Position numbers and translations under genes: made by a program
Shown here: piece after piece, positions 10,479-57,730 of the stretch
Numbering within the stretch: position 1 is the stretch's first letter
How the letters are laid out: every line of letters starts with the position of its first letter
Notes under the pieces: generated by a model
Seen by the model: only the letters and a program-made list of their open reading frames with translations
Told to the model about the DNA's origin: nothing
Databases searched by the model: none
NCBI GenBank assembly: GCA_965637545.1
Contig: OZ281495.1
Coordinates: 4,650,001-4,714,000, forward strand
Reading direction: 5' to 3'
Length of the DNA stretch: 64,000 nt
From: Phallusia mammillata
Taxonomy: Eukaryota

Positions 10479-19870
<9,392 letters not shown>

Positions 19871-22859: not shown

Positions 22860-24595
22860 ATGGCGAGTGTAGAAGGTCCGTTACTAAAACTTTATGACAT
22901 CATTTTCGGAACAATTGTTCCATGGTGGGAAACACTGTTAATGCTTTTCATATTTATTCTGTTTCTGATTGGACAAACAACTGACAATTACAAACCGGGC
23001 AAAGAGGAAGATCTGCTTTCATGTTGCAGAATAATTACAGGTGCGTAGTATTTAAATCAGAGGTGAGCAACCTTTGTTACTGTAGGGCCAATTACAAATG
23101 TCAAAATTAGACCACCCCTGATTTAAATGCTGCATGATATTACAGATTTTTGAGCTGTCTTGTCTTTTAGTTTTTTACCAAAGTATTTAACTGGTGCTTT
23201 GTATTGCAGATCCTCCTATTACACCTGTCGGAGGAAATCGCTGTAATAACTTTACCTCTTGCTGTTCTGTTAACTCCACCAAAGAAAGGTATAATATAAA
23301 ACTCGGTGAGTGCTGTGCTTTCTGCAACCTGGTGTACAAGTAGAAGTAAGCATTTGTTTAGCAAAGATTTATTTTAGACATTTCGTTTCCGGCACAAACT
23401 TCGTCTGACCTCACATGCGAAAAGGATAATCTGGGTAAGTATGTTTAATGATACAATAACGGTCCAAAAAAAACTTAGACGTAAAAAGCGGCATGCGTTT
23501 GAACAATTAAGCATGTCGCTTCTTACGTTTATTTGTCCCTACTTTACGTCTATAAACTTATGAACAATCAATCAATCAATTTAGTTTATTTGTTTCAGCG
23601 CCCACGTACAATAATAAAGACGAATAACATACGGTTAAACATATAAAACAAGCGTTAAAACAAAAAGGGTGCAGCTGGAGCCACAATTGGATATTTTTGC
23701 AAGCTGACCCTATCTATTTGTATATGGCGAATTTATGTACACATTGCGATAAGTAGAAGAAAAATAATAAGCACTGCGTTATACGACATCAAATTTTTCC
23801 CATTTAATAAATAAAATATTGACATGAAAGGTTGTGAAGATAAGAACAGATCCGTATCGTGTTCCTGGGTACGACTTTCACAGAGAGTTTTAACAAGAAT
23901 TATTCCTTTTAAATAACAAACGTTATTTAGCAGATGATCATGCCCTTGTTACCTGTGTTAATCAACTTTCCTGGGTAGAACGAAACTTCGGGTATTTCAT
24001 CACAATTTTGGCCTCCGTATTTGTGTTTGTGGTTCTTGTTTGGAGACTTAATCCGGAGGCCAGACTGGTTTTGAGCGAGTGGAATTTCATATTTGAAGAG
24101 ATATATGATATTTCACTTGACGAAATTATCCAGTTTAACGACAGAATATTAAGACCCCAACAACGACGAAGAAAGATCAATGACAGATATAAAGTCTTGA
24201 ACAAAATTAAAAAAATTGTAGTAGACTCTACCAGCGGGGAGAAAAGCTGGTACGTTAAACAACTTACATCGTATGCAATAAAAATTGGCTGCACTACCAT
24301 TATCACTATTGTCCTATGTTTTTGTTGCTACAATTATGTTCACTCTAACCATCGGTGCTCTATAAAGCAATATAAACCTGGAACTTACAGTTGCATTCTA
24401 AAATCCTATGAAGCATACTGGACAAACTTTATTTTATGTTTTATAGTCTTTGTCAGCATTATAACCATGATTTGCGCCCAATGGCGTCTACATAACAAAC
24501 AATTTGGCACCCCCGACTATATGGTAATGCTGCAGTCAAAACAAAAACAAGTTCTACCCGGTATCAGACAGAGACTGACGCAACTAGAAAATTAA
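22860..24595 (+). CDS. LRRC8/pannexin-like 4-TM channel lacking LRR domain, copy A (exons 22860-23040, 23378-23434, 23931-24595; 300 aa)
   Basis: In-frame GT-AG splicing (phase 1/1). Motifs TIVPWWE (LRRC8 KPWWD), TCVNQLSWVERNFGY..VWRLNP (LRRC8A VCYENRLHWFAKYFPY..FWFKFP), and HRC..TYSC before TM4; four hydrophobic segments; stop about 35 aa after TM4. Confidence 0.85.
23058..23120. mobile_element. 63-bp hAT mini-MITE in intron 1 of channel A
   Basis: TIRs CAGAGGTGAGCAAC / GACCACCCCTG; perfect TSD ATTTAAAT. Confidence 0.8.
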
Positions 24596-24652
24596 ATAAA
24601 AAAATAACATCAAAATATCTAAAAACAATTGTTCGCGTTTGTTATACTAAAC

Positions 24653-24709
24653 CAGGAGTGTGCAACAGGCGGCCCGCGGGCCACAATCAAAAATTGTTGC
24701 ACACCCCTG
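24653..24709. mobile_element. 57-bp hAT mini-MITE
   Basis: TIRs CAGGAGTGTGCAACA / TGTTGCACACCCCTG; TSD 6/8. Confidence 0.75.
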
Positions 24710-27356
24710 CACTATACCCTCTGTGCCACGGTGTGCTTTTTATTTGCGTTGCCATAAATGTCTCGCTTAAAATTTGATTGTTTTTCTTAGGCGTATCGCC
24801 GTCTAAAAACGCCGGTATTTGTGATTTGGTATGTTTCGGAAATTTTTATCAAAATAATCAAACAAAATGAAAACTCAGTATTGCTGACTTATACGTTGAA
24901 CTATACCTTACCGCTTTTTGCTACTGTGTGAATTTTTTGAGGTGATTTGTATGTTATATTTCTTTTGAAGAAAGTGTCACAATAGAAGCGTGACGTTATG
25001 ATTATAAAGTTTAACAAACAATTTATTATTATTACTGGTGCACTGTTTACATATTTTTGAACAAAGTAAAGCTTTTGTTTGGAAATAAAGTTCATTGTGT
25101 CGTTAATATGGCGCCCTGTTAAACATAAATTTGTCCAACCACTAGCTTGTGCTACTGAGCTGTTTACTGTGTTAATCGACACCGTATTATCCCAGAAGCT
25201 TTTGTGAAACTTGTTTGTCATGTAATGACTGAAAACAAACCTGCTGACTCATGATTACCTGTTAATCTGATTAAAACCTGAGCAAAGAGAAATTTATTGT
25301 AATTGAGCACCTGAATGGAGCTCCGTATGCGTAGATCGGTTATATCCAAACTTTTTAAAATATGGTTTAATGTAAAATTGTTTGTAGCTCCTCGTGTTTA
25401 ATTGCAAAGGCATTTATTGATTGGTCATGAGCTTTTTACTACCACATACAAAGTAACAGCCTCTAATATAAAACTTTGCTGTGGGTTACAAAAAGCCCTG
25501 CTGTCCAAAAAAAAAAACGTTTTCTGCTGGATTGTGCTTCACAGTGTCAAAAGCAGCGTCGCACACAAAGGATGTAAAAAAGACTAACCAGGCAATGCAA
25601 CTTTACAACATGATAATTAATCATTTCAATCCTCAATTCAATATATGCAACAAAGTTTTAGAAAAACGAATATGTTTCAAAAAAGCGTATTAACTTCTGC
25701 AAAAGTTGTACAGTCGGTAGATGACGCAAGAGAAAAAGTTATGCAGTCAATAGATACTGAGTTTTTCGCTATAAAGCACGTCAGTATTCCAGTGAATTAA
25801 TGCAGTCGCGGCTGATGCTTCACTATGAACACTGCAACGATTCTTGCCAATGCTCATTTTTCTTTCAATATTGTGTTAGCATGTTTGCGGGTTTTTTTTT
25901 GTAGAAGCCGTTCTTGTCCTTTTTGGAGCACACGCGCGTTGATTGTCACATTCCCACGCTTGCAAAAGCCTTTCTGAGGCGTGTTCCGCGCTGTAGTTCG
26001 ATAGCGTTTCATTCTGTTTGAGAGGGGCGTTGTGCACGTTTTGCCCTACACTTGTAACTTAGTGAAACCTGTAAATGACAGCTTTAAAGCTGTTGGAAGA
26101 ATCACAAAACCCTAACAAACGTTTGTTAGTAAACGCATCAGCTGTTTTGTTGTTATTGTACGTTTGCTTGAGTGTAAACAAGTTTGTTGAAGGATCTGGA
26201 AACTGTTTTAATAACAGACATGTATGATCCGTAAGCTGTGCTGTAGGTTTAAACTTGTTAACATGTCACCAGTTAGATCTAATTGATGATTACGACCAGA
26301 TTAGATGAGAACTTGAAAGCACTAGTTAAAAGAGGAAGGCGCGATGTTTCAAATGGCGAACAACTTTTTGTGCATTACAGAAGTGAGTGTAAGGAAACTG
26401 TAGAGTTATTGACAGAACCTGTCTGTATGACACGCCAAATGATAAACTAAATACTATTTTACAAACAATCTATCAAACTGAACTTGGCGGACAATATTAT
26501 GTATCCTTATTTATACACTCAAAAACCTCTTCTTTCAATTTTTTATCAACATTTATAATTTGAATTGTAATCAAACAACTATTTGAATGGGCCCATTTTG
26601 ACCTGTGATTCCTGGAAACTAGGCAAAATATCGATTGCGCTTTCTAACTGCATGCATCGATAAAATACATCAATTTAAATATTAATGTTTAGAAAACAAT
26701 TTCAAAATCATCTATATGCACAATTTATATACTCCCCCTTGGGTACCACTTTTAGACACTGCGTTAATATTTTAAATATAACACGACAAAGTTAAACGTG
26801 ATCAATTTGAATAACACAAAGTTAAACGTGTTCAATTTGCGTGGTGGATATATGACAAACAGTTTTCGTACAAGATTGTTTTAACTGGAAGTCTTGTTTA
26901 ATCGTTACACAGCAACTACTAGAAATTCGAGAACAAAACCATATGATTTGTTTGTTTTGAATTAGTACAACTAACGTAGTGTATACCACCCTGTTATGCC
27001 TTTTTGCTGTTGACATTCTACAACTGTAAGCGGCGGACGGGTTTATATTGGTGACTTTTGTTTTGCTACAAGTGTTATTGTTTGTCGTTATCACGTAAAC
27101 CAATATTCCCATACAAAAAAGAGAAGTTTTAGGGAATACCGTAGTGATTCGCATCCCAGTGTCAATCTTCTTTGTTTGATGCAAAACCTTCTTCACTGAT
27201 GTAGACGAAGGTAAACCTGAGTTGAATAACAAGCTATGTTACCAATATTAGCAAAACCACTCGCTATAAAGCAGAGTATTTCCCAACAGATTCAGTCATA
27301 GGAATTGGTTGGTCGAGTTGTCGTTGTGGAAGGTAATAACTGTTTCAAACTTTTCA

Positions 27357-27460
27357 ACTGAAGATTGCTAAACGAGTGCGGAAACAACAATGAAAAAGCA
27401 AAACAATCTCTTGTTAAGGACCTCGAAAGGCAGTGACATTTGAAGGCACCAAATGTCTCG
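27357..27460 (+). pseudogene. Frameshifted fragment of a small-protein (S-family) gene, paralog of S2
   Basis: ACTGAAGAT..GAGTGCGGAAACAACAATGAAAAAGCAAAACAATCTCTTGTTAAGGACCTCGAAAGGCAGTG aligns to S2 (TED..EC...EKAKQSLVKDLE.AV) with indels; upstream about 26940-27340 is homologous to about 28670-29070. Confidence 0.8.
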
Positions 27461-27784
27461 GGTTCAAAACGCGTTTCTTAAATTAAAACCTAAGAATAAA
27501 ACGCTACTCATTACATTTGCGCAAGATTCTTTATATTTCTTTATCTTTATAAATATGCTTTGTTTAAGATTTCCTTGACCTTTTTACACCAGCTATGAAT
27601 CTGTCACATTTACTACTTTGGCTATGGTATGAATTTGTAGATCTTCAGTGGGTCATGTTTAATATTATTTTCAGTATTTAGCGTAAAAGCAGTGTAACTT
27701 GTTTCTGGTTTTTCTGGTTTTCTGGATTTTTCTGGTAAAATCTACTCTTTTTCATCATGTTCTTTGACAAAAAATGCCCTAAAG

Positions 27785-27891
27785 CATCGGTTCCCAACCT
27801 GTGGGTCGCGACTCCAACTGGGACTGCCTGACAATTTGCCAGGGGTCGCCTAAGGCATGGCTAACGACACAAGAAAGGTTGGGAACCGCTG
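27785..27891. mobile_element. hAT-type MITE
   Basis: TIRs CATCGGTTCCCAACC / GGTTGGGAACCGCTG; perfect TSD CCCTAAAG. Confidence 0.85.
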
Positions 27892-29071: not shown

Positions 29072-29359
29072 ATGGAAGTTAACAAACGTTTGAGACTTCT
29101 CAATAAAATTACTGAAGATGTCAAGCCAGAAGAGTGCAAATATGACAAGGAAAAAGCAAAACAATCTCTTGTTAAAGATCTCGAAAAAGCAGTGGAGTTC
29201 AAAGACACCGAATATCTCAGCAACGTTTACAGGGAGAGTCAGCTGTTCCGACAAAAAATAGCTAAAGAAGCTTGGGATACTTTCACGGCAAACATGGCTA
29301 AAAGCGACGAAAACCGCAAGGCTTTTCAAGCAATTTTACAGACATGCATTGTTGCTTGA
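29072..29359 (+). CDS. Small helical protein S2 (95 aa; cassette 2), C-terminal CaaX-like CIVA
   Basis: Intact ORF, close paralog of S1 (LLNKITEDV..EEC..DKEKAK..L..DL.KAVE.KD.EY..NVYRESQL.RQKI.KEAW.TFTA.M). Confidence 0.85.
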   Translation: MEVNKRLRLLNKITEDVKPEECKYDKEKAKQSLVKDLEKAVEFKDTEYLSNVYRESQLFRQKIAKEAWDTFTANMAKSDENRKAFQAILQTCIVA

Positions 29360-29615: not shown

Positions 29616-29850
29616 ATGTCTATAGACATAGTTGAAAAAACATTACTGAAACTTTATGACATCATTTTTGGAACAATTGTTCCTTGGTGGGAAACGCTTT
29701 TCATGCTTGCTATATTTATTTTGTTCCTGATTGGACACACAACTGACAACTACATCCCGGGATCAGAAAAAAATCTTCTCATTATTTTAAACTCCATGTA
29801 ACCATCGATCTTTTCTTAATCTGCTGTGAAATTTCAAACAATACTCTCGA
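29616..29850 (+). pseudogene. Truncated LRRC8/pannexin-like channel copy B (exon 1 only)
   Basis: KLYDIIFGTIVPWWETLFML.IFILFLIG.TTDNY nearly identical to copy A. An insertion of about 40 nt with a stop at 29801 separates NLL from TGCTGT (CC). No exon 2/3 before S3 begins. Confidence 0.8.
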
Positions 29851-29973
29851 TATGAGACCTTAAAAACTTTGAAGCTTGTTTAGGCTTAACAATGAAAATT
29901 AATGCTTCGTTTTGCAGACTATTTCTCCATTTTAACAATGCCTGTGTACGTGTAAGTGGGACACAGAATCGAG

Positions 29974-30264
29974 ATGCAAGCTAATGCCTGTCTGTCACTA
30001 CTGGAAATGATCACAGAAGACATCATACTAAAAGAGTACAACAACAAAGATGATGATGCGACCGAATCTTTTGTCGCCGATTTGGAAAAAGCCTGGAATT
30101 TGAAAGATATACAATACATAGCCTATGTTGTGCAAGAGAGTCAACTAGAGCGGCAGAAAATAACTGGTGCAGCCCTCAAAAAGTTCCTTAAAAAAATCGG
30201 AGAAGACAATAAGAAAATACTGCTTCAGAAAGTGAATGAAATAGGTTCTGTGATGGTCATGTAA
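29974..30264 (+). CDS. Small helical protein S3 (96 aa from the first in-frame ATG; cassette 3)
   Basis: Divergent member: LSLLEMITED...DLEKA...KDIQYI..VVQESQLERQKIT; acceptor TTTTGCAG near 29918. Confidence 0.8.
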   Translation: MQANACLSLLEMITEDIILKEYNNKDDDATESFVADLEKAWNLKDIQYIAYVVQESQLERQKITGAALKKFLKKIGEDNKKILLQKVNEIGSVMVM

Positions 30265-31050: not shown

Positions 31051-32511
31051 ATGCCAGTCATAGACGATTTTTCATTAAAACTGTTTGAATACCCATTTTT
31101 GACAATAGTTCCCTGGTGGGAAACATGTTTGATGTTCTTTCTTGTCGTTATGCTAGTTCTCGGGCAAATGGCTGAAAACTACATTCCTGGATCCGAAGAC
31201 AAACTTCTTTCGTGTTGCAAAACTAACTTGGGTATTTATTTTTTCATATTGTGGATCATACGGTAAACATAAAAATACAGTAATAAAATTAAGTAACTAT
31301 AAAGCGTAACACATTTAGAACCATAAGTTTATCAAAAAAGTTAAGGTATTTAAACACAAAGTTACAAACAAGCGTGGCTTTCGGAATCAAAAAACATTAA
31401 TCAGTAAAATAACGGTAACCTGCCATCCTGTCTAGTAGTTTATTTTGGAGATTTTGTTTTCATGCAATTATAATTGTTTGTTAAAAGTTAACCATCCATT
31501 AACACAATTGTTCATCAATAATATGTATTGCAGTTGTCTGTGCGGAAGATCAATGCGATCACATACCTACAAGCAACATATTTAATTCAAGTGCAACATA
31601 CGACTTCTGCGAAAGCACAACACCAGGTTCGTTGACATGAAAGCTGAACTTCAACTTTTTATGCAACAAACTACCTTAAGACCCAAATATTTTTCAGATT
31701 TTATTTACGTGAAGTTGTCCTCATTGTCCGATCGAAACTACCTAACAAATCACCTGTTTTGTCGAGATGAATCTATCGGTTTGTTCTTCTGTTTTAGTGG
31801 TTCCACACAAACCTACTATCTACCTGCTTATCCAAGTTTATTGTCGTTTTTTCAGACCCCCATGCCATTGCTTCCTGTGTTTTTCAACTCTCCTGGATAG
31901 AACGGAACTTTGAGTGTTTCATAACTATATTGGCTCTCTTGATGGGTACCCTTGTTTTTAGTTGGAGATTACATCCGGAGGCACGGTTTGTCATGAGCGG
32001 ATGGAAGTTTGTGTATGAGCATCTAGACACCATTTCAGTAGATCAAGTAGAAAAATTTAACACCAATCGATTTAAGCCACAAGAAAAACGAAAAAGTAAT
32101 AAAGTTAATGAACAACTGGACAAAATGAAAACAATTGTACTAAACTCTTCGTTAAACCAAAGCTCGGTTTTAATCAACTTAACCTCGTACTGTATAAAAA
32201 TTATTTTGACTGTTGCTCTTATTGTTGGTCTCGGTTTAAGTTGGTATTTTTTTCTAAAGCCCGACTATTTGTGCTACACAAAACACCATCATCCAAAAAC
32301 TTACCGTTGTATAATAAAAGCGTATAATTCCTATGTTACAGTGGCCTTTTTATCCATTTGCACTTTAACTTTCTCTTTCGCTGTTATGTTATGTGCGTGG
32401 GGACGCCTGAAAGGGCAAAAATTTGGGTCTAAAAATTACATGTTAGAAATGTTGTCAGCACAAAAACGTTTGTCTTTGAAACAAAAACAGATCGCTAACA
32501 AATTCCAATAA
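31051..32511 (+). CDS. LRRC8/pannexin-like 4-TM channel lacking LRR domain, copy C (exons 31051-31231, 31534-31626, 31856-32511; 309 aa)
   Basis: In-frame splicing; exon 1 is 181 nt as in copy A; TIVPWWE, SCVFQLSWIERNF, WRLHP, YLC...KTYRC (LRRC8A RTYRC), QKFGS. Confidence 0.85.
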
Positions 32512-38400: not shown

Positions 38401-38656
38401 TGTAACCATAACTAGAAGTGTTTTTTGGTGTGCTGTTGTTTTTGCGACATACGTGTTGCAATATCGGGTGGTTCATTTAACTTGACTGACAACTGGGTGT
38501 TTCCAATTGCGTGCTTGATTAAAAGAAAACATTGAGTGCTTGGTCAACAAAGGAATTTTGACTTTGCCCGATTGACAGAGACTATATAAGTGGCTTGTTA
38601 CTAAACATAGTTTTGCTCTACGATGGTTTGGGTATTTCTATCACCGTGCTCTACAT

Positions 38657-40408
38657 TTGTTTTATCAGAACAGGGAAAGTGTAAAAAGCGTTGGACTAAT
38701 CTTGGGAAAATACACAAACCCAAAATTGCAGGCATATACCTACATGTCGCTGCTGAATAAAATGCCGGATGGAAAGTTTGGAAACAAAGTGTATGGAAGA
38801 TATTCAGATGTTGCTGACTTGGAAAGGAAATTGGATTGGAGGGAATGTCACTTTATTCATAATATCGGCGATGAGAAACCACATGCAATAACGCAATACA
38901 TAAGAAAGGAGTTGAAAATTAAGGAGGATTCAACGAGCGATGAAGAAATCCAGGCACCTAATTTGGTCTGCCCTATTCCACACATTAGGAGGGCGGATTG
39001 GTATGATATTTCTAATTCATGGTTCTTTCAAAGGAACGCATGCTTGTCAAAAATTGAAGGAGATCCAACAAGCGATGAAGAAATCCAGGCATCTAATTTG
39101 GTCTGCCCTATTCCACATATTAGGAAGGCGGATTCGTTTGATGTTTCTAATTCATGGTTCTTTCAAAGGAACGCATCCTTGTCAAAAATTGAAGAAGATT
39201 CAACAAGCGATGAAGAAAACCAGGCACCTAATTTGATCTGTCTTGTTCCACACATTAGGAAGGCGGAGTCGTTTGATGTTTCTAATTCATGGTTCTTTCA
39301 AAGGAACTCATGCTTGTCAAAAATTGAAGAAGATTCAACAAGCGATGAAGAAATCCGGGCACCTGATTTGGTCTGTCCTGTTCCACACATTAGGAAGGCG
39401 AAGTCGTTTGATATTTCTAATTCATGGTTCTTTCAAAGGAACGCATCCTTGTCAACAATTGAAGAAGATTCAACAAGCGATGAAGAAATCCGGGCACCTA
39501 ATTTGATCTGCCCTGTTCCACACATTAGGAAGGCGGATTCGTATGATATTTCTAATTCATGGTTCTTTCAAAGGAACGCATGCTTGTCAAAAATTGAAGG
39601 AGATTCAACAAGCGATGAAGAAATCCAAGCATCTAATTTGGTCTGCCCTATTCCACACATTAGGAGGGCGGATTCGTTTGATATTTCTAATTCATGGTTC
39701 TTTCAAAGGAACTCATGCTTGTCAAAAATTGAAGAAGATTCAACAAGCGATGAAGAAATCCAGGCACCTAATTTGGTCTGCCATATTCCACACATTAGGA
39801 AGGCGGAGTCGTTTGATGTTTCTAATTCATGGTTCTTTCAAAGGAACGCATCCTTGTCAAAAATTGAAGAAGATTCAACAAGCGATGAAGAAAACCAGGC
39901 ACCTAATTTGATCTGTCTTGTTCCACACATTAGGAATGCGGAATCGTTTGATATTTCTAATTCGTGGTTCTTTCAAAGGAACGCATGCTTGTCAAAAATT
40001 GAAGAAGATTCAACAAGCAATAAAGAAATCCAGGCACCTAATTTGGTCTGCCCTATTCCACACATTAGGAAGGCGAAGTCGTTTGATGTTTCTAATTCAT
40101 GGTTCTTTCAAAGGAACGCATGCTTGTCGAAAATTAAAGAAGATTCAACAAGCGATGAAGAAATCCAGGCACCTAATTTGATCTGTCCTGTTCCACACAT
40201 TAGGAAGGCGAAGTCGTTTGATATTTCTAATTCGTGGTTCGTTCAAAGGAACGCATGCTTGTCAAAAATTGAAGAAGATTCAACAAGCAATGAAGAAATT
40301 CAGGCACCTAGTTTAGTCTGCCCTATTCCACACATTAGGAAGGCGGATTCGTTTGATGTTTCTAATTCATGGTTCTTTCAAAGGAACGCATTCTTGTCCA
40401 AAATTTGA
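38657..40408 (+). CDS. Unknown protein or exon with 11 tandem 45-aa repeats (EEDSTSDEEIQAPNLVCPIPHIRKADSFDVSNSWFFQRNACLSKI)
   Basis: 583-codon ORF with 88 unique codons followed by 11 in-frame units; possible acceptor TTTTATCAG near 38666, so the start may be an upstream exon. Confidence 0.55.
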   Translation: MFYQNRESVKSVGLILGKYTNPKLQAYTYMSLLNKMPDGKFGNKVYGRYSDVADLERKLDWRECHFIHNIGDEKPHAITQYIRKELKIKEDSTSDEEIQAPNLVCPIPHIRRADWYDISNSWFFQRNACLSKIEGDPTSDEEIQASNLVCPIPHIRKADSFDVSNSWFFQRNASLSKIEEDSTSDEENQAPNLICLVPHIRKAESFDVSNSWFFQRNSCLSKIEEDSTSDEEIRAPDLVCPVPHIRKAKSFDISNSWFFQRNASLSTIEEDSTSDEEIRAPNLICPVPHIRKADSYDISNSWFFQRNACLSKIEGDSTSDEEIQASNLVCPIPHIRRADSFDISNSWFFQRNSCLSKIEEDSTSDEEIQAPNLVCHIPHIRKAESFDVSNSWFFQRNASLSKIEEDSTSDEENQAPNLICLVPHIRNAESFDISNSWFFQRNACLSKIEEDSTSNKEIQAPNLVCPIPHIRKAKSFDVSNSWFFQRNACLSKIKEDSTSDEEIQAPNLICPVPHIRKAKSFDISNSWFVQRNACLSKIEEDSTSNEEIQAPSLVCPIPHIRKADSFDVSNSWFFQRNAFLSKI

Positions 40409-40618
40409 AATTTTTATAAAAAGGAATAAGGAAATCCAGGCCCTTATTTTGGTCTGCCCTATTCCACACATTAGGAAGGCGGATTCGTTTGATGTTTCTA
40501 ATTCATGGTTCTTTCAAAGGAACGCATTCTTGTCCAAAATTTGAAATTTTTATAAAGAGGAATAAGGAAATCCAGGCCCTTATTTTGGTCTGCCCTATTC
40601 TACACGTTAGGAAAGCGG
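38921..40618 (+). repeat. 135-bp tandem repeat, 11 full in-frame copies plus about 1.5 degenerate 3' copies
   Basis: Units start at 38921, 39056, 39191 ... 40271 with exact 135-bp spacing; a T insertion creates TGA at 40406. Confidence 0.97.
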
Positions 40619-46664: not shown

Positions 46665-48102
46665 TATTCATCAAAAATAACTTGTAACTCGATTCTTGGC
46701 AATCACTTGCCCAAATATTTGTATTTCCAAGTGGTGTGAAACTTCCTTTTGAAGAGTGAGTAACAGATGCGAAACCCTTTTGTTATTGGATAGCGTGCTG
46801 CTGTTTTTATAGTTCCAACTTGTACCATTCGTGAGCGGGTGTGTTTGGATAACTAAACCTATTCTTTAGGTTTAAACAAACCATTGTGTGGATGCATAGT
46901 ATATATATTGATAAAATTGAACATGTTATCCATACTCGTTTTCAACTCGCTCACTTTCAACTGTGTGCTGCAGAATTCGGTATCAGCTTTTTAATTTAGG
47001 CGATTTGTGGTAGTCCAAATTAAAGAATGTACCGACGACTTAGAAAAGTGAACTATCTACTTTACAAAAAAACTAATAGAACCTTTTCAAAAAAAGTATA
47101 ATATAACCTGTGGGCAAGTCATGCTATAGTTCTTGATGTTTTGCTCTTGTCAAATTTAATTTTTAGTTTGATTGCGGTGGCGTTTTTCTTACTGTTTGCG
47201 CATTTGACAACCGCTCATAGGGGAATCGAATCGTGAAACTGATAAGCATTATGTCACGTCACGCGTTCGATTCGCTAAAGCGTAAAATTACATGGCTGCC
47301 AGACCGAATCGCATTTAAGGTTTTTCAGTTTTGCGCAAAGACGATTTGGAGTATTATGGGCATACATAAGGCCGGAATAGTGTTAATTTAAAAGTATTTT
47401 TGGACTGTATATGTCTATGCGTCCGAAAATATCTAAATTGATTTGTTTGTTGTTTGCGTTGAGTTCAGACATACCAAATTAATGTGTATCAGGAAAAGTT
47501 GGAACAAACATTTAAAATATAAAGATCACTCTCTGACTTCATTGTCAATTAGTAGTAACACCTGATATCAAAATTGGAGATACTATAACTATGTCACATT
47601 TTAAGGCCATACATTAGCACATTTAAAAATTCCCTTATATGACTGGACAAATCTGTTAAACTTTGTTTCATTGGAGTCTCTTGTATGTTATATGAATAAT
47701 AAACGACTAATTTGTATAACTTTGCACCAGTTAGACGAAAAACTTTTTTAATTATGCAACGTGGGGTATTGAAACGTTTGTTTAGCATCGAATACAAATT
47801 TCCCCGTTATGTTGGGTACAAAATTAAACAAACTAACATATGGTCTTAAGTTAACCCACTTGTTCAAAAAAAGGTTTCCGTAAGCGTATCGACGCCTAAG
47901 CGTATTCAAACCACCTGTACCGAGCGCATCGAGAATCAGAGAAGTCTAATACGCTTTGCCTTTTTTCTTTTTCGGAAACGAGAAAAATGCGTATCGAATA
48001 AGCGTATAGAATACACTTAAACGCTCCATGTAAGTAGACTTATTTTGTTTAGGCATTATCTGTTCAACTTTAAACCATTAGGTGCATAACTTGGCATGAG
48101 TC

Positions 48103-48402
48103 ATGCAGCAAGTTTATGAATCCTTGGCGGCTTTGCAGAAATTAACCGAACACTGCAAATTAAAGGCATGTAATGATGACGAAGAAATGGCAAAACAATC
48201 GCTTGCGGACGATCTCTGTAAAGCAGCTAAATACGACGATTTGGAATACATCACCAACATTCACAGAGAAGCACAACTCGAACAGCAGAAAATCACCAAA
48301 CAAGCGTGGGAGATTTTCGAGGAGAAAATTAAAAACAACACAAAGACTGGAAATACCTTCAAAACATGGGCGTCATATTATATTCCACATTGTGCCAAAT
48401 AG
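48103..48402 (+). CDS. Small helical protein S4 (99 aa; cassette 4)
   Basis: S-family motifs LAALQKLTEH...CNDDEEMAKQSLADDL.KA...DDLEYI.NIHREAQLEQQKITKQAWE.F; acceptor TTGTTTAG ending at 48052, 50 nt before the ATG. Confidence 0.85.
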   Translation: MQQVYESLAALQKLTEHCKLKACNDDEEMAKQSLADDLCKAAKYDDLEYITNIHREAQLEQQKITKQAWEIFEEKIKNNTKTGNTFKTWASYYIPHCAK

Positions 48403-48593
48403 AAACTGGTTTATTGTACCGACACTCATTTTTGTGTAAACCAAGTGAAGTATATCTTTATCGCCTCGCCTTGGGATAAAATTGTAGTTTACTAAAATAA
48501 CCCGTAAAATGTTATCATATTAGTGTAAATGCACTTAAAATGCCACGCATAATTTGTGTTTGCACTTAATTGTTTTCTTTGTGTTCGCATTCT

Positions 48594-48617
48594 AATAAAA
48601 CAACACGCATTTTTCAG
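48594..48617 (+). promoter_or_regulatory. AATAAA poly(A) signal immediately upstream of the splice acceptor of channel D (same arrangement at 56727-56752 for channel E)
   Basis: AATAAA at 48594-48599 then TTTTTCAG ending at 48617, ATG at 48643; AATAAA at 56727-56732, AG at 56751-56752, ATG at 56778. Confidence 0.6.
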
Positions 48618-48642
48618 GTTAGGTGTATTGCATAAGCACAAA

Positions 48643-49849
48643 ATGGCAACAGTACCAGACCCTTTACTTAAGTTGTATGATCATATACTTGGTACAATAG
48701 TCCCATGGTGGGAAATACTACTGATACTGGCATTTTTTGTTTTGTTGCTAATTGGACAGTCAACTGATGACTACATACCTGGATCAGAAGACAAGTTTAT
48801 TTTCTGCCATAACGGCTCTGAAAGTAGGTGCATGTTGATGGTTTGTGTATATAACTTTCGTTATGGCTAAATATAAAAATACGTTGCGAAAAAAACAAAA
48901 TCAGTCGATGCAAAATTTCGGAATACATGTTCTCCTAAAATTGGCATCGTACTGTAAAATCATGGAGTAAAATAGCAATAAAAATAATAAAAAATACGTT
49001 TTTTTCTTACACGCTTTTAATATGGCAGTTTTCGTCAAGTTCTAGTTGTGGTTTCCCAAAAAGAACTGTTTGTTTCTATGAAATTTTACGTTCCAAGTTT
49101 AAATATTATGAACAAATCAATAATATACTGTATAAGCGAGTTTTTAAAAAAAAAAAAACTGTACTACTAATTAAAACTATTTTATTCCAATAGTGCTCGA
49201 AGACGCCACACTTTGCATTGATCAAGTGCACTGGCTGGATCGAAACTTTGGCAGCCTGATTATCACGTTGACGTTTTTATTTGGTTTTCTAAATTTTATT
49301 TGGCGATTGCACCCACAAGCAAGACATGTGTTGGCAGAATGGAACTTTGTATTTCAACAAATGCCACAAATATCTCCCAATGACATAATACAGTATAACA
49401 CAGTTTTCGGAAAGCCTTCAAACAAGCCTAGAAAGAACCGACCCCAATTCGATGTAATACAAAAATTGAAAACTATTGTAACCAAATCTCACGATGTTGG
49501 TGCTAATCTAAGTCTCATTACTTCGTATTATACCAAATCGGAAGTTACGGGCATTATCGCATTTGTTTTGGCGATTTGCTTATGGTTAGTTCATAGTTCC
49601 TTTACATGTGTACTTTCTTACACACCCCAAGTCTTTCATTGTATTCTAAAATCTTATGAAAGCTATTGTACAAACTCGGGTTTTTGTTTTTGTGTTCTCT
49701 TATTATCTTATGTAATAATGTGTATTGCTGATAAACGGTTAAAACAGTGGAAATTTGGGTCACCAAGGTACATGTTGGAAATGTTGTCAAAGCAAGGCAT
49801 GTCTGATGCTGATCGAAACAAAGCTTTACAACTTTTGGCTGAAAACTAA
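48643..49849 (+). CDS. LRRC8/pannexin-like 4-TM channel lacking LRR domain, copy D (exons 48643-48823, 49194-49849; 278 aa)
   Basis: 181-nt exon 1, phase-1 junction in frame; TIVPWWE, LCIDQVHWLDRNFG, WRLHP, FTC...VFHCILKSY, WKFGSP. Confidence 0.85.
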
Positions 49850-50902
49850 ATAACAGTGTTATTTTTTCTTGAAATGCCATTGAGTGAAACACGTAGGTAA
49901 AACATTTCACTGTCACTTTTTCTTTAGATTTGATCCACGTTGAAACCAAAGTATTGTATAGTTTCAACACAATATGTGTCACAATAAATAGTTGTACTAT
50001 TTATTTTGCTGACTTTTTGTTGGAATCAGAAATCATTCCAAGACTGAGAAAAATAATTCTTTCGGTAATTAACAGTCTTCGCTTAAGTTCGCTCAGTTTA
50101 TGCATGTGTATGGAAAAAATCACTACGAAACAACTGATCAGTTTGGTTGAATACCTCGGTAGCTTTCACTCAGACTGGAATAAATTACCCACTCATTAGA
50201 GTTTCTTTTGTCACTGTTGTTTGCAAAATCAATATTTATACCTACATAAATATCTGCAACAACAATGGCTCTGTTTGTTCTTTCCTTCCTGTATTTTCTA
50301 TTCACTGTCATCTTGCTTCGAGTTAAAAATGAGACAGACAACAATACTGCAATGCTTTTATCCAGGTAACACCTTCTATGTTTGCTTGTTCGCTTGATGA
50401 CACTTTTCACATGAAGTGTGAAAATAGAACTACTAACATAATAACTCACAACAGTGTAAGTCTGTTAAGTGCCGATAAGTGGCGTAAAGAGCACAGTTAT
50501 TTTAATTAACAGTGAGAATGGAATAGGGTTAGCAATTATATTGAACGTTAAGTTTGAAGGATGGCTTCATTGTTTTATTATTATTACAAAACTTTCCCCC
50601 AACCCTAGCAGCCCCAACGGTCAACAATTCCACAAATTGTTTGTAAATATTAGCAAAAGCTCTTTGATTCATCCATCGGTATTTAGCAAACATCTTAACA
50701 CTTTTACTTTGGCGCTCCCTTTAAGTGTGCAGTCATTCGTGAACGTTCTATAGTTGGTGTTGGTTGGAGGTGGAAGTACATTGTTGTGCTGGTATGAATT
50801 AGAAAAATAAACAATTGTACATGACGTATTCGTGCGTTCCTCCGCCCAGCGCCAAAAAAAAAAAACAATGAACCAGACAAACTTTGCAAACTATATTTTT
50901 AC

Positions 50903-51335
50903 TAGTGATGCACCGAACCCTCCTAAAAAGGTTCGGGCCGAAACCGAATATTCGGCCTCTTCGGCCATGAGGCCGAATAATTTCGGCCGAATCAGGCCGA
51001 ACCTAAAATCCCCTTTCTTATGGATGTTTTCAACTGAACTTTGTGTTGTTGGTGCGAGTGAACTCAATTTTGACAAACTAAAATCACTTTCACATTGTGT
51101 AAGATTTACTAAACATCTAAGTTTTTGCCGACACAGTGGCTCTTATAGATACAACAAATAGTTAATTTATGATGTTTCGTATGGGCGAAAATGAAATCTA
51201 AGGCCTTAATTCCATGCAATAAAAAAGTTCGGTTTCGGCCGAATTTTCAAAAAAGTTCGGGCCGAAACCGAAACATTGGAAAACAACGGATTCGGCCGAA
51301 ATGTTTCGGCCAACCGAAACTTCGGTGCATCACTA
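50903..51335. mobile_element. hAT-type MITE with TTCGGCC repeats
   Basis: Perfect TIRs TAGTGATGCACCGAA / TTCGGTGCATCACTA; perfect TSD ATTTTTAC. Confidence 0.92.
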
Positions 51336-52199
51336 ATTTTTACCGTTTTACCCGCCGAATTAGTAAAAGCAATCTGGATTTTGCTTTTTTCTTTATTGTT
51401 ACGTAACAAAGCGCCTGCCATGATTGGTGCAATCTAATCACGTTTCACAGTTTCTTTCTGTGCTGTAAGCAGCCTTCTTTTTTAGAAATATGTGTAAGCT
51501 TACTGATCAATTTATTGTGGGCGGCTACGTGCAAAAGAATGCTAAACAGTAATGAACAGTGATTAGTTTTTAACCTGGTTTTACAACAAGTTGGTACGTT
51601 TGATTGTATGTAATTTTAATGTCGTGCTAACATTGTGGTGAATAGTGAAGTATTGACTTTCCTAGTGTCACATGTTTCTGTGTGTAACTTTATTGGCCAT
51701 TTTGTGTGTGCATATTACGTTAGATGATTATGACACTTTTCTGTTCGCTTTCACAGAGAACCAATGCTGTTCACAAAACGAAGGAATATACCCGTCAGGC
51801 AGTGTTGATTTCAAAACGATTTGGGCAGCCCTTGTGCAGTGGTCGGTGCAGATCCAGGCAGCACAGATTGTGAAATAAATTAAGGCCACTATAGAGTAAA
51901 CATATAATATTGGTTAAAATTTGTTCTAAATGAGCAGAGCTTTTCTTATTGAAGCCCCGGTAAAGAACATAAGTTTATGACCCGCTGTTGCCCATGTAAG
52001 AATCATATCAGCTTTTGGTAAAATCGGAAACTAAAAACGACCCCAGCAAACATTAAAATAACGTAAACCAAAAATATTAAAGTAATTCTTGGCAACATCT
52101 CTGCTCCACAGGAGTTTGTACGAATTTAAGACTTAACAAACAAACATTGCCACCAACCAGTAAAAAATCAGAAAATCACATGCAAAGCTTGTATCCAGG

Positions 52200-52709
52200 T
52201 AACACATTCTATTTTTTTTTGTTCGCTAGATGTCGCTCACACTACATCACGTTTTAATTGCTTCAGGTAACCGACGAACTTATGGTTTGCATTTAAAGTG
52301 TTGTTCGCCGACAGAAGAAAACAATAAAACAAACACACATAAAGCAAACAAAGGCGATTTTGAGTTAATAAAACTTTGTTACTGAGATTTGAAGCGTTAA
52401 AGTAGGATACGTAGGACTAACATAGAAGAATAAATGGCATTAAAGGTAAGACTTAGTTCACTTTTTAAATTTGTCAGTCCTAAATAATAGTATTTGTAGT
52501 TTATGTTACAGTACGAGATGATAGCGATACATACAACAACACTCTTTTCCTGAAAAACAAGTTGAACCAAACTTAATGAAAACCACATAACACCGTTTTT
52601 TGCCGTTTCCGTATCGTTCTCTTCTTTCTATGACCCCCTGGAAAGTTTGACGCTGTATATCATCCTGAGGAACGTCATAAATTCGAGAAACGTCAAAAGT
52701 CTCAGACGC
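52200..52709 (-). pseudogene. Decayed duplicate of the last exon and 3' flank of the EF-hand gene
   Basis: TTTTTTTGCAG|GCGTCTGAGAC..GAATTTATGACGTTCCTCAGGATGATATACAGCGTCAAACTTTCC matches exon 61242-61097 with TGG->TGA and an insertion; downstream flank matches about 60620-61090. Confidence 0.8.
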
Positions 52710-52808
52710 CTGCAAAAAAAAGTGTTATTTTCATTATCGTCATAATTTATTTGTGTTCCTATTAAAGAAATATTTACCACTTTACAACCGACATGGAATA
52801 TACCGGCA

Positions 52809-53016
52809 CAGAGTTGTAAGTCGGGTCGGGTTGGACCAGACCTCATTTCAAACAGCCCTAAAACGCCTTTGTCTATTGTGTTTGTTGTCTTGGTCTTTCC
52901 TGGTGCTATAATGTATAGGCCTGTCAATCAAACTTTCGGGCCTAAACGGCTTCTCAAAAACGAATGGGATTCGGGCCGGGTTTCGGGCTCCAATTTCAGG
53001 GCCGTTTACAACTCTG
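52809..53016. mobile_element. hAT-type MITE
   Basis: TIRs CAGAGTTGTAA / TTACAACTCTG; TSD TACCGGCA/TACTGGTA. Confidence 0.75.
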
Positions 53017-53842
53017 TACTGGTAAGTGCAAACCATTACATGTTATGTGAAAGTTTACACTTTTCAGCAGACAGTCTTTTTTTTCACTGGGTTTGAAGCC
53101 AAAAAGCTCCCGAAGACGAAACCTAAAGATTTGTTTGATATGGGTTAAGCGACCTAGACCATTCAGCCAAGTTCTTTTCCGAATGGGTCGTGTTTGCAAA
53201 TGTAACCTGACTAGAAACATTATGCATTGTCTGTGGGCAATGATTATTGTATTAGGTATTTCCTTTCATACTGAAATAACATCATTTAGTGGAAACCACT
53301 TTAATTTCCAAGCAGGTGCTTGGTCATTGTGGATGTTCTTCCTTCGTGGTGTTTGTATAGGTTCCATTCCGTTTCGGACTCAAATCAGCTATGACGTTAC
53401 TGGATAGCACGTGACTGCTCATGTTTATCGTGATGTCATGCAGCATCGCGATTCAACACTTGTTGGCATATTTCTTGGAGAAGCGCAACCAGTGGTTTTG
53501 TCGGGTTTTTAGTAGCAATAGGCCTATATCGGTATTGGCTGTTGATTGTTAAGGAGGTCAAAATCTCTTTTTACCCCGCCAGTTGCATGTTTTGTTTGTT
53601 TTCTGTTGATCCGTTAAATCATTTTTCATTTGATCGTTTCGCCTTTGGGCAATCAGTGACTTTAGTTAAGTATAATCCATCATATACCATTTCCAGTGCA
53701 TTATTAAGCGGTCAGAATGGGGTGGCAAGCGTCTTGGCAACTTCATGTAATGACACAAAGCCTTGCTGATAACGAATTTATTAAACATACATTTTTAATT
53801 GGTACTTAAGCTCATTTTTGTATGTGTTGTTTTAACATTTAA

Positions 53843-54538
53843 GGCCCGTTTACACTATGCGTATCGCGCTCGCTCAGACCTGCGTAAGTTTGTTTGTTTC
53901 ATTTTTTCTGTCTGGTCTCGCGCTTTTTTTCGGGCGCTCAAGTCTCGTAGAAATGAGCGAGCGATCGCCTGCCGAGCGTTTTTCTGCGTATCAAGCTGCT
54001 TGAACCTGCGCAAACGGTTTGTGTTATCGCTGTGTGCGGGTTTGTGATTTGAAAACGTTGGCTCATTTGCCAAAAATAAATGATGACACGCTATTTGCCT
54101 TCAATTTAAGTATTTATTACATGGTTACGATTGCATGTTATGTTTTATTGTGTTTAAATATTGTAATTAAGTGCATTTAAAATGTACATTTACCCTAGCA
54201 CAGCGGACTATATGTCATAGAAACATGAAAATGAGATAAACATGCCACCAATCTATACAACAACATCCAGAGCTATCCTGTATGATTACCAAGATGCAAA
54301 ATCATGTTTACTAACAAAATATGATTTAATTTAGATTGATACAAAGCTTTTTCGATCTAAAATAGGTAACAATAAATTTATGTGGTAATTTATGGTCATC
54401 GACATTTGCTGTGAGCTGAAAAATACGTCTAGTATATTATTTAGTAAGCTTAGGTACGCACCGATAATCGCAGTGTAAACGGAAGGGGTCGCAAGGTAAG
54501 GTTAGGTTAGGCGCCACTAAGCATAGTGTAAACGGACC
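53843..54538. mobile_element. Non-autonomous DNA transposon (PIF/Harbinger-like termini; superfamily uncertain)
   Basis: TIRs GGCCCGTTTACACTATGC / GCATAGTGTAAACGGACC flanked by TAA/TTT. Confidence 0.65.
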
Positions 54539-56206
54539 TTTACAAGCTGAGAAGCAATAGCTTTTTCGACATGACACGAGTCTTGGTATCATGATAATCT
54601 GGCAACGCAACACCTCTGGTGATGTTTTTAATTAGAATGTTACATCAGCTCAAGCGCAGTGGCTCAAGCAATAACAAGTAATTTTTGCATTTACATTATA
54701 CGTAGCATGTCAAACCTACGCATGTACTGGCTCATGTGTCATGTCTTGGAAAAAAAGAGGGATTGACTACCGAGATTTTTTCCGAGTGTTCCGAGCCTTT
54801 TCAAATTCAATTACTTATCACATACCTATAATTTTATGTGGTGTTTTTTGTATGTTTGAATATTGTAATTAGGTCTAGTTTTTCGCAAAAAGAATATATA
54901 AAATAACAAATGTAAGTTTTGTAGCTACAACAATGTCAAAGAAAAAGAGGTGCAGTGCTAAGCAGAAAAGTTTTACCCGCACATTTGAACAGGAGAACTT
55001 TATTTAAATCAGGGGTTCTTAACCTTTCATAGACTGTGTCCCCCTAAGTAACCCTTCAGGACCCTGCTTATTAAAAATGCAGATGAAAAACTCAATACTT
55101 ATAAAATCCAGGATCCATCAGGATAACAGATGAGTGGTATAAACTTTAAGACATTGAACTGCTCCTGCGTACCTCAACATGGATAACGCCACTAAAACAA
55201 TACGTTGCGAAATTTCAGTGAAATGTCGAAACAAGAATAGTTAACGGCAAATCAACTTTAGTTCCTGAATCGTTAAAGTTTATTAGCAGTTGAAGTAAAA
55301 GTAACATTATTTGTGGTGGCCTTAATACAGACACGAAGATTAAGTGAGAAATAGTCGATTTAATCAAGAATACGAATGTCCAATAACGCAATAAATCGAA
55401 ATTTAAGTAATATTTGGATATCCCCATCATTCAACGCATTGCGAAAGATAAGCGGGCTACATCACATTGGACAAATGGCTTAATGTCTTTTGGTGGATGT
55501 TTCTAGTGAGCCTACACCTGAAACTCCCATGTAATACAGCTCGTGTCCCCTCTGGGGAGTCGAGAAAGCGAGCGTTTTTTTGTAAAATGTGCGCGAAATG
55601 GACAGGTCAAAATGTGCAGGTGCCAAAATGTGCAGGTCAAAATATAAAATGTTGAACGGTAAAAAAAGAAAGAAAAAACCCAAATTAAAATAAGATAAGG
55701 AAATAAATTTTCTGATAATGCTAAAAAGCAGTGCCCATTCTGCACGACATTTTTGTTAAAAATAAGTGTCATGTTAACATTTTGACCTGCACATTTTTGC
55801 GCACATTGTGCAAGTATTCGTCATTAGCCCTGTTGTCCCTGGGGGCGATGGGTCCTGATTAACAACCGCTAATTTAAATGGATCAAGTTGAAATTGTGTT
55901 TATTAAGGTTATAGTAAGTAAAAAAATGTGTATGATTTTATTATTTTAAGAACGTAATAGGTTTTTAAATAAACTATCATTTGTCGCTTTATCCCTTTTT
56001 GCTGTCCCAAAATATCAAAACAAACCTTACATTTTTTAAACAGCACCATTGCATATTTGAGTCACGATCCGCCAGTAGTCACTTTTAATGGCGTCATAAT
56101 GTTAGAAAGTATTACTAATATTGCGTTACTGACAACAACAACGTTTTATTTATAGGAATTACCTAACCAACTTTAAACGAACTTGGTAAATAATTTGTCC
56201 TAAGCT

Positions 56207-56503
56207 ATGCAGGTTTACGAGTCCTTGGCAGCTTTGCAAAGGTTGACTGAGCATCGCAAACTAAAAGCTTTTAATGATGACGTGGAAATGGCGAAAAAAT
56301 CCCTATGTGATGATCTGAGCAAAGCTGCAGAATTTGACGATTTGGAATACATCAGCAACATTCACAGGGAAGCACAACTCGAACAACAGAAAATTACCAA
56401 ACAAGCGTGGGAAATGTTCGAGAAGAGTTTTGCAAACAACACAAAGATCGGAAAAAACTTTAAAACTTGGGCATCGTATTATATTCCGCAAAGTGTCGAA
56501 TAG
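56207..56503 (+). CDS. Small helical protein S5 (98 aa; cassette 5), close paralog of S4
   Basis: Intact ORF; homologous acceptor ending at 56155, 51 nt before the ATG. Confidence 0.85.
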   Translation: MQVYESLAALQRLTEHRKLKAFNDDVEMAKKSLCDDLSKAAEFDDLEYISNIHREAQLEQQKITKQAWEMFEKSFANNTKIGKNFKTWASYYIPQSVE

Positions 56504-56777
56504 AACATTTTTAAACCAATGCCTTTTGCCTGTACGTTTTTCTCTAAGCGTGATATTTGCAATCTTTTTAGCCGCAAGTTTCTGCCTTTTTCCTTTACAC
56601 ACGTTTTGTGCAGGCGTTTTTCGCTTCATTCTATTATTTCCGATAAAAATTGAGTTATAATTCGGATATTATTACTGTCATGTAGAACCAAGCCTTAAAT
56701 CGCACCTTCATCGCCTAACGTTTGGTAATAAAGCAAATCATGTATTTTTCAGGTTAGGTGAATTGTATAAACACAAA

Positions 56778-57730
56778 ATGGCAACTGTACCAGACCCATT
56801 ACTTAAGTTGTATAATCATATACTTGGTACAATAGTCCCATGGTGGGAAATATTACTGATTCTGGCATTTTTTATTCTGATGCTGATTGGGCAATCAACT
56901 GATGACTATGTTCCTGGATCAGAAGACAAGTTTATTTTCTGCCATAAAACGGCTCTGAAAGTAAGTGCATGTTGATGGTTTGTTGATATACGTTGATGAT
57001 GTTTTATTCTGTAAAGTTTAAAGAGCCAAGTTTAAACATTTACAATCAATTCGTTTTTTTATCAGTGCTTAAAGACGCGATACTTTGTATTGATCAACTG
57101 CACTGGCTGGATCGAAACTTTGGCAGTGTGATTATCATGTTGGCGTTTGTATTTGGCTTCTTGAACTTTATTTGGCGATTGCACCCACAAGCAAGATATG
57201 TGTTAGAAGAATGGAATTTCGTATTTCAACAAATACCACAAATATCTCCCACCGACATAATAAAATATAATACAGCTTTCGACCAGCCTTCAGACCCAAA
57301 AAATCCTAGAGAGAACCTACCCGAATTCGATGTAATACAAAAATTAAAAACCATTGTGACCAAATCTCACGATGTTGGTTCTAATCTAAGTCTCATTACT
57401 TCGTATTATAACAAATCGGAAGTTACGGGCATTATCGCATTTGTTTTGGCGATTTGCTTATTCTTAGTTCATAGTTCTTTTACATGTGTACTTTCAGATT
57501 GCACACCCAAAGTCTTTCATTGCATTCTAAAATCTTATGAAAGCTATTGGACAAACTCAGGTTTTTGTTTTTGTGTTCTCTTTTTATCTTATGTAATAAT
57601 GTGTATCGCTGATAAACGGTTAAAACAGTGGAAATTTGGGTCACCAAGGTACATGTTGGAAATGTTATCCAAACAAGGCATGTCTGATTCAGACCGAAAC
57701 AAAGCTTTGCAATTTTTAGCAGAAAATTAA
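56778..57730 (+). CDS. LRRC8/pannexin-like channel copy E; +2 nt in exon 1 relative to D (frameshifted, or rescued by an alternative acceptor)
   Basis: Close paralog of D. Exon 1 56778-56960 is 183 nt (CATAAAACGG vs CATAACGG). The homologous acceptor ending at 57065 is then out of frame, while AGs ending at 57016 or 57025 are in frame. Confidence 0.65.

Follow-up and report, generated by a model that had tools for sequence, protein, structure and literature searches.

The window, the whole 64-kb stretch of DNA that was analysed, contains five copies of an exon encoding the tetrapeptide PWWE, all on the + strand and each with the motif opening a hydrophobic stretch (at 22920, 29682, 31111, 48703, and 56838), which bears out the original prediction of PWWE at the start of a first transmembrane segment. 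Four of the five exon-1 copies connect across GT-AG introns to a second exon, giving the genes g1, g2, g3, and g4, and these four complete genes and the one shortened copy form a tandem cluster (Table 1). Each gene has a single phase-1 intron located within extracellular loop 1. The products comprise 281 (g1), 278 (g2), 278 (g3), and 283 (g4) residues. In g4, two additional A nucleotides in exon 1 put the homologous donor (56960) out of frame, and a donor 4 nt downstream (56964), or another acceptor, is therefore required; a 298-residue product is also possible for this gene. Of the length range of 278–309 residues proposed earlier, 278–283 was recovered and 309 was not reproduced. The shortened copy, judged by its sequence, is a truncated duplicate of g1.

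Table 1. Coordinates of the channel-like genes, the small upstream genes (S family), and the operon-like junctions in the window
Feature	Position	Strand	Remarks
S-family gene upstream of g1	21870..22148	+	92 aa
g1 exon 1	22860..23040	+	N-terminus, TM1 with PWWE, first half of extracellular loop 1; donor CAG/GTGCGT
g1 exon 2	23931..24595	+	end of loop 1, TM2, 78-aa cytoplasmic loop, TM3, loop 2, TM4, 35-aa tail, stop; acceptor TTATTTAG/
S-family gene upstream of orphan exon 1	29072..29359	+	
Orphan exon 1 copy	29616..29801	+	PWWE, terminates in stop, without exon 2; 84% identical to 22881-23017
S-family gene upstream of g2	29974..30264	+	
g2 exon 1	31051..31231	+	
g2 exon 2	31856..32511	+	
S-family gene upstream of g3	48103..48402	+	
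Operon-like junction ahead of g3	48594..48617	+	AATAAA, about 16 nt on TTTTTCAG acceptor, 25 nt 5' of g3 ATG
g3 exon 1	48643..48823	+	
g3 exon 2	49194..49849	+	AATAAA 134 nt 3' of stop
S-family gene upstream of g4	56207..56503	+	
Operon-like junction ahead of g4	56727..56752	+	same type, AATAAA and TTTTTCAG, ahead of g4 ATG
g4 exon 1	56778..56964	+	donor at 56964 keeps frame
g4 exon 2	57066..57730	+	AATAAA 122 nt 3' of stop

Hydropathy analysis places four transmembrane segments in each of the four products. The N-terminus preceding TM1 spans about 19–22 residues, with PWWE at residues 21–24, and the cytoplasmic loop between TM2 and TM3 about 76–78 residues; the stop codon follows TM4 by 35–37 residues, in agreement with the predicted tail of about 35. 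The TM2-flanking motifs that had been described, C-x3-[LV]-x-W-x3-N-F ahead of the segment and W-R-L-[NH]-P behind it, were confirmed in all four proteins, as were the two invariant cysteines of loop 2. Loop 1 contributes a conserved cysteine that closes exon 1 and another that opens exon 2, six residues ahead of the conserved tryptophan. Since these motifs are retained across paralogues that are only 37–44% identical (41% for g1 and g2), they are not chance features within the family. Lysine and arginine are enriched in the TM2–TM3 loop and in the tail, loop 1 is acidic, and by the positive-inside rule both termini would be cytoplasmic. As anticipated, no LRR exons follow the genes: tandem LRR motifs were found in no frame of the 64-kb window, and a search for long open reading frames, downstream of the genes and in the rest of the window, yielded only an unrelated 45-residue repeat.

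A tandem array of this kind could consist of decaying, unexpressed duplicates without present function. One copy is shortened, g4 needs a shifted donor, and g3 was left without coverage by the contigs of four probable RNA runs from the same species, which matched dispersed repeats only. Those runs, however, were small sets of contigs, and their classification as RNA was a guess. Against decay, the frames of the four full copies are intact, conservation extends to their cysteines as well as to splice sites and poly(A) signals, and dN/dS stays near 0.2 in the young pair and does not exceed 0.28 in those older pairs with estimable dS. The four genes are under purifying selection, and decay is very unlikely. 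Taken together, the data support g1–g4 as genuine, selected genes for four-transmembrane proteins that end soon after TM4 and lack an LRR domain; that they are expressed appears probable.

When the exon-1 and exon-2 translations were compared separately with Pfam, neither PF12534 (Pannexin_like) nor PF00876 (Innexin) was matched at E ≤ 1, and the comparison of the two profiles that the original prediction had proposed as a check thus favored neither. Sub-threshold Pfam matches to Claudin_2, Pex24p, and DUF2207_C were dismissed as hydrophobic noise. A word-indexed homologue search returned nothing for g3 exon 2 or for a four-sequence profile, even at E ≤ 10, and no match was obtained when 1.84 billion representatives were searched exhaustively with HMMER. 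No account of genes like these emerged from literature searches covering the PWWD motif and tunicate LRRC8.

Two approaches nevertheless converge on one superfamily. A profile of the TM2 region compared with all PDB sequences retrieved pannexin-1 as the top family, with 24 of 25 matches (E 0.009–0.016) at the homologous position. The alignment takes in W-x3-[KN]-[FY]-F on the way into TM2 and W-R-[FL] on the way out, and further includes a cytoplasmic-loop helix with the pattern F-[VI]-x-E-E-[LI]-D, together with TM3 and the first of the loop-2 cysteines; the best match is weak, at 19 bits and E 0.009, and is limited to about 55 residues around TM2. PDB searches with single sequences or with the TM3–TM4 half found nothing relevant. 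Independently, the language-model features of g1 and g2 have as their nearest Atlas neighbors chordate clusters annotated with PF12534 Pannexin_like, Pannexin 2, and Innexin, at scores (0.93 and 0.90) in a range, 0.90–0.93, that by the tool's own note is also reached by 4–10% of shuffled proteins. The top neighbor is the same for both, a chordate cluster with PF12534 in 19% of its members, and the ranking of the neighbors is shared as well; with g3, the feature search gave nothing above 0.78. The similarity to pannexin-1 and to the Pannexin_like/Innexin clusters is weak but specific.

The weakness of these signals, together with the absence of homologues from very large libraries and of a confident structure, would also be expected of a lineage-specific four-transmembrane family unrelated to pannexins or LRRC8 proteins, in which the four helices, the 2+2 cysteines, and the tryptophan and basic/aromatic pair flanking TM2 arose by convergence or chance. 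Such an origin is unlikely. The two methods are independent and point to the same superfamily, the pannexin-1 match is topologically homologous and comes almost exclusively from one family, and g1 and g2 yield identical neighbor rankings despite their divergence. In addition, the combination of two cysteines in each extracellular loop with an extended, helical TM2–TM3 loop on the cytoplasmic side is the architecture of the pannexin/innexin/LRRC8 superfamily.

The Claudin_2 matches (PF13903), found with exon 2 of g3 (E 2e-4, 21.5 bits) and g4 (E 4e-3, 17.4 bits) below the cut-off of 29.1, raise a different reading, in which the proteins would belong to the claudin/PMP22/EMP tetraspan superfamily and act in junctions or adhesion rather than as channels. 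The match is missing in g1 and g2, and no claudin appeared among the PDB or Atlas results. It would also pair TM3, loop 2, and TM4 with profile positions 49–157, which we take to be claudin loop 1, TM2, and TM3, setting an extracellular cysteine loop opposite a cytoplasmic turn; moreover, the TM2–TM3 loop is very short in claudins, compared with about 76 residues here. A claudin-type identity is therefore extremely improbable.

Judging from the searches and the shared architecture, the proteins probably belong to the pannexin/innexin/LRRC8 superfamily of large-pore channels, as members that have diverged extremely and lack LRRs. A narrower form of this explanation, compatible with it, assigns them specifically to the LRRC8 lineage, either as descendants of a pannexin-like ancestor that preceded the LRR fusion or as LRRC8 proteins that lost the LRR domain. 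The LRRC8-like identity originally proposed therefore probably holds at the level of the remote superfamily, whereas a specific affinity for LRRC8 is unsupported, the PDB profiles having found pannexin-1 and no LRRC8. Several features do lean toward LRRC8: the top Atlas neighbor carries PF12534, the PWWD of human LRRC8A is roughly as far from the N-terminus as PWWE is here, and the cysteine-to-tryptophan spacing ahead of TM2 is LRRC8-like and not pannexin-1-like. PWWE at the start of TM1 is not known to be a pannexin feature. AlphaFold models of exon 2 alone reached a pLDDT of only 61 and 54 in two runs, and fold searches with these models (Foldseek against PDB, VIA, and Atlas), another of the checks that had been suggested, retrieved only generic helical bundles; LRRC8 chains were nonetheless co-linear with the partial model from before TM2 to past TM4, at noise-level Z, and LRRC8 was the sole channel family among the long co-linear alignments of this low-confidence model. 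On the other side, three PDB-wide profile searches returned no LRRC8 chain at E ≤ 10 despite the many LRRC8 entries in the database, while pannexin-1 did come up within that limit, PF12534 is unmatched, and the defining LRR domain is missing. The claimed likeness of PWW[DE] to LRRC8 was not significant in the PDB-wide search, where the exon-1 profile that includes PWWE matched neither pannexin nor LRRC8. Placement within the LRRC8 lineage is accordingly a tentative option that we consider doubtful. Nor does the missing LRR domain have to signify a pre-fusion lineage or a secondary loss, because pannexins and innexins are not known to carry LRRs, and a protein that stops directly behind TM4 is the norm in this superfamily.

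Comparison with the individual families reveals a mixture of shared and divergent properties. Pannexin-1 (PANX1, PF00876), the sole PDB family of relevance detected by sequence, likewise has four transmembrane segments, cytoplasmic termini, two cysteines per extracellular loop, and no LRR domain. The matched PANX1 chains are longer, however (344–447 residues, compared with about 280 here), the loops of g1–g4 are compact, a Pfam Innexin match is lacking, and the long, regulated C-terminus of pannexin-1 contrasts with their 35-residue tail. Invertebrate innexins share the probable superfamily, the 2+2 cysteines, and the absence of LRRs, but the g1–g4 products are about 100 residues shorter and have no Innexin HMM match, and the YYQW-type loop-1/TM2 signature of innexins was not seen in them. 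The tandem array itself is reminiscent of the lineage-specific tandem expansions of innexins (PMC9949713). Every chordate innexin or pannexin surveyed bears at least one N-glycosylation sequon (Welzel and Schuster 2022, PMC8769644), whereas a sequon in an extracellular loop is present in only one of the four proteins described here. With LRRC8A–E, the subunits of VRAC (PF12534 plus LRR), the proteins have in common the four-transmembrane architecture, an N-terminus of about 22 residues ahead of TM1, the PF12534-bearing language-model cluster nearest to g1 and g2, and 2+2 loop cysteines, comparable to the two disulfides that connect loops 1 and 2 in LRRC8 (C54–C350 and C153–C335 in LRRC8D; bioRxiv 10.64898/2026.01.22.701128). 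They differ in lacking the LRR domain (about 15–17 repeats in LRRC8) and the IL2 linker, in their far shorter loop 1 and IL1, and in the absence of a PF12534 HMM match and of LRRC8 chains from the PDB sequence searches.

By analogy with pannexin-1 and LRRC8A, a simple model would have the g1–g4 products assemble as hexamer- or heptamer-type rings around a wide pore lined by TM1 and the N-terminus. Disulfides between loop 1 and loop 2 would build the outer mouth, as in both of those channels, and the rings would pass ions or small metabolites through the plasma membrane, possibly between cells. Membrane orientation and function as an oligomeric channel are predicted.

More generally, the cluster may point to channel diversity that has stayed hidden in an invertebrate chordate. 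LRRC8 genes have been reported from vertebrates only (PMC6363415). A proposal by Abascal and Zardoya (2012; cited in PMC6363415) derives LRRC8 from a pannexin-like channel that became joined to an LRR domain, either at the chordate base or within vertebrates. According to a survey from 2022 (PMC8769644), a single innexin/pannexin is retained in lancelets, lampreys, and most tunicates, and from this its authors developed the idea that connexins evolved after innexin diversity had been lost. If the superfamily assignment is correct, surveys of this kind count too few superfamily members in tunicates, since the family escapes Pfam HMMs and is absent from very large protein libraries. The genes would then provide a concrete set of relatives without LRRs for testing in which order the steps of LRRC8 origin took place, and minimal channel subunits of about 280 residues for structure–function work.

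The array is best explained as a series of tandem two-gene modules, each with a small gene followed by a two-exon four-transmembrane gene. The genome is probably that of an ascidian (sea squirt), an origin with which the operon-like junctions and the chordate Atlas neighbors agree. The small genes, here termed the S family, encode orphan helical proteins of 92–99 residues, and one lies upstream of each of g1–g4 and of the orphan exon 1. A homologue search with the S family was empty, with no exact match on record. A bolder, composite proposal is that LRRC8/pannexin-type channels lacking LRRs have undergone a large, fast-evolving radiation in ascidians, so far unrecognised and missed by standard HMM surveys, and that this clade is the pre-LRR pannexin-like partner of the LRRC8 fusion or, alternatively, that the co-duplicated, operon-linked S proteins are separate cytoplasmic regulatory subunits replacing the fused LRR domain. 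As a whole this proposal is improbable; were the radiation real, early chordates would not simply have lost innexin-type diversity. Finally, in two of the modules (g3 and g4) the S gene and the channel gene are separated by an operon-like junction (Table 1), an arrangement that suggests operon-type co-transcription of the two genes.

The window (G+C ~35–38%) contains animal genes with GT–AG introns, and its six-frame translation holds five PWW[DE] motifs, all on the + strand, each opening a hydrophobic stretch after a 19-residue N-terminus. Four of the five first exons join a long second exon via a single phase-1 intron, giving four complete genes (g1–g4). Because of two extra A residues in exon 1 of g4, splicing at the homologous donor (56960) would break the frame, which is regained with a GT four bases downstream; the strong donor combined with an upstream acceptor would alternatively yield 298 aa. 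The remaining first exon duplicates module 1, the unit containing g1, in truncated form (84% identity). The upper length of 309 aa in the original prediction was not borne out, the models here spanning 278–283 aa.

Coordinates of genes, junctions, and other features in the window
Feature	Position	Strand	Description
g1	22860-23040 + 23931-24595	+	281 aa
g2	31051-31231 + 31856-32511	+	278 aa
g3	48643-48823 + 49194-49849	+	278 aa
g4	56778-56964 + 57066-57730	+	283 aa
Orphan exon 1	29616-29801	+	runs into stop
S-family gene	21870-22148		upstream of channel copy
S-family gene	29072-29359		upstream of channel copy
S-family gene	29974-30264		upstream of channel copy
S-family gene	48103-48402		upstream of channel copy
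S-family gene	56207-56503		upstream of channel copy
Junction	48594-48617		before g3 start; AATAAA, then within ~16 nt TTTTTCAG acceptor
Junction	56727-56752		before g4 start; AATAAA, then within ~16 nt TTTTTCAG acceptor
Tandem repeat	38915-40618 (ORF 38576-40405)	+	135-bp unit × 12.6
Probable-RNA coverage	50900-51400, 52870-53017		88–95% likeness
CLCA-like ORFs	4712-6644	-	exon-sized
MAP kinase-like exons	15223-16376, 11686-12777	-	C-lobe

Hydropathy analysis places four TM segments in every protein. TM1 begins V-P-W-W-E and is followed by an acidic loop 1 of 40–42 aa; a K/R-rich, predicted helical loop of 76–78 aa separates TM2 from TM3, loop 2 (~29 aa) lies between TM3 and TM4, and a basic tail of 35–37 aa follows TM4, close to the predicted ~35 aa. 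This layout fits with both termini lying inside the cell. Across paralogues that are mutually only 37–44% identical, the motifs first noticed in the sequence were all found and are kept. Conserved are one Cys at the end of exon 1, C-x3-[LV]-x-W-x3-N-F entering TM2, W-R-L-[NH]-P at the TM2 exit, and two Cys in loop 2. An extracellular-loop N-x-S/T sequon occurs in g3 only.

The proposed comparison of Pannexin_like (PF12534, the LRRC8 channel part) with Innexin (PF00876, including pannexins) favored neither, as Pfam returned no match to either at E ≤ 1 for the exon-1 and exon-2 translations. Neither a word-indexed search nor an exhaustive profile search covering 1.84 billion representatives found any homologue. 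When a profile built from the exon-2 translations of all four genes was compared with every PDB sequence, the four best matches were all frog pannexin-1 constructs (E 0.016–0.034), aligned co-linearly from the Trp before TM2 through TM2, the W-R-[FL] exit, the F-[VI]-x-E-E-[LI]-D helix, and TM3 to the first loop-2 Cys. With a profile of the TM2 region, pannexin-1 entries, from frog and others in the PDB, made up 24 of 25 matches at E ≤ 10 (best E 0.009). No LRRC8, innexin, connexin, CALHM, or claudin chain appeared among the PDB profile matches at E ≤ 10. By language-model features, the named cluster nearest to g1 exon 2 is a chordate one with PF12534 in 19% of members (0.93; 215/256 features shared), followed by two Pannexin 2 clusters (0.92 and 0.91), then an Innexin+Pannexin_like and a Pannexin cluster (0.90 each). 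The same top families were recovered for g2 (0.90–0.87), which is 41% identical to g1; g3 was not recognised by this search (0.78). The PDB matches and language-model neighbours are two independent, weaker signals in agreement. Two structural models, built from contiguous exon 2 only, reached pLDDT 61 and 54, and as low-pLDDT queries in fold searches returned generic helical bundles. A sub-threshold Claudin_2 match in g3 and g4 was rejected: g1 and g2 lack it, and, given the presumed claudin topology, the segments it aligns would cross the membrane in opposite senses.

The most economical reading, which we consider probable, is that g1–g4 form a compact branch of the pannexin/innexin/LRRC8 superfamily that lacks LRRs and has diverged very far. 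A specific affinity to LRRC8, as originally proposed for channels stopping right after TM4, is possible: the top language-model neighbour cluster carries PF12534, and LRRC8A presumably shares both the distance of PWW[DE] from the N-terminus and the short Cys-to-Trp spacing. The sole significant sequence link is to pannexin-1. The observation is borne out and the interpretation in part: these are four-TM, LRR-less proteins and probably superfamily relatives, and a specific LRRC8 affinity is not supported. Because pannexins and innexins, to our knowledge, never carry LRRs, ending after TM4 is the superfamily default and, taken alone, does not point to a lineage that predates the fusion or has lost its LRRs. 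As a divergent superfamily branch, the proteins would, by analogy, assemble as ring-shaped oligomers around a wide pore, and loop 1–loop 2 disulfides would stabilise its extracellular mouth. According to published accounts, invertebrates lack LRRC8 (PMC6363415), and only one innexin/pannexin is reported for most tunicates (PMC8769644). The literature search found no description of such LRR-less channel genes; the family is probably a new, highly divergent variant within a known channel superfamily.

The young pair g3/g4 (dS 0.30) has a Nei–Gojobori dN/dS of 0.21, and older pairs with unsaturated dS reach at most 0.28, so purifying selection acts on the gene copies. An AATAAA is found 134 nt past the g3 stop and 122 nt past that of g4, and similarity between the two peters out ~230 nt past the stop. 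As predicted, no LRR exons lie downstream: an LRR-core scan in six frames found no tandem LRR array in the whole 64 kb, and between the genes the + strand holds a single long ORF, a tandem repeat without LRR character. The repeat (91% matches), open for ~600 codons, encodes a D/E/S-rich 45-aa unit with two Cys, has no credible Pfam family, and may represent an exon of a repeat protein or a fortuitously open minisatellite. The small contig sets of four probable RNA runs from the same species left g3 uncovered; within 47900-53800 they covered only two parts, each matched by many contigs, and these parts probably consist of dispersed repeats or pieces of transposons.

Every channel copy (5/5 modules) is preceded by a single-exon S-family gene encoding a helical, charged protein of 92–99 aa, for which neither a homologue at E ≤ 10 in a word-indexed library nor an exact record was found. 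The spacer between the S and channel genes measures 711 nt in module 1 and 786 nt in module 2; modules 3 and 4 have AATAAA 49–51 nt upstream of the channel ATG. AATAAA followed by an acceptor is an arrangement seen in ascidian operons resolved by spliced-leader trans-splicing, and the junctions before g3 and g4 suggest such processing. Together with co-duplication in 5/5 modules, they suggest co-expression, with the S protein a possible co-transcribed partner of the channel genes; block duplication by itself would account for the pairing as well.

Rfam gave no family at gathering score across 1-64000. Elsewhere in the window, ORFs that combine a metalloprotease-type motif (HEWAH...GVFDE) with a VWA-like stretch recall CLCA (calcium-activated chloride channel regulator) genes. 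After the MAP kinase-like exons comes a long ORF (363 aa) of low complexity, rich in S/T/N/Q, that may be the tail end of the same gene.
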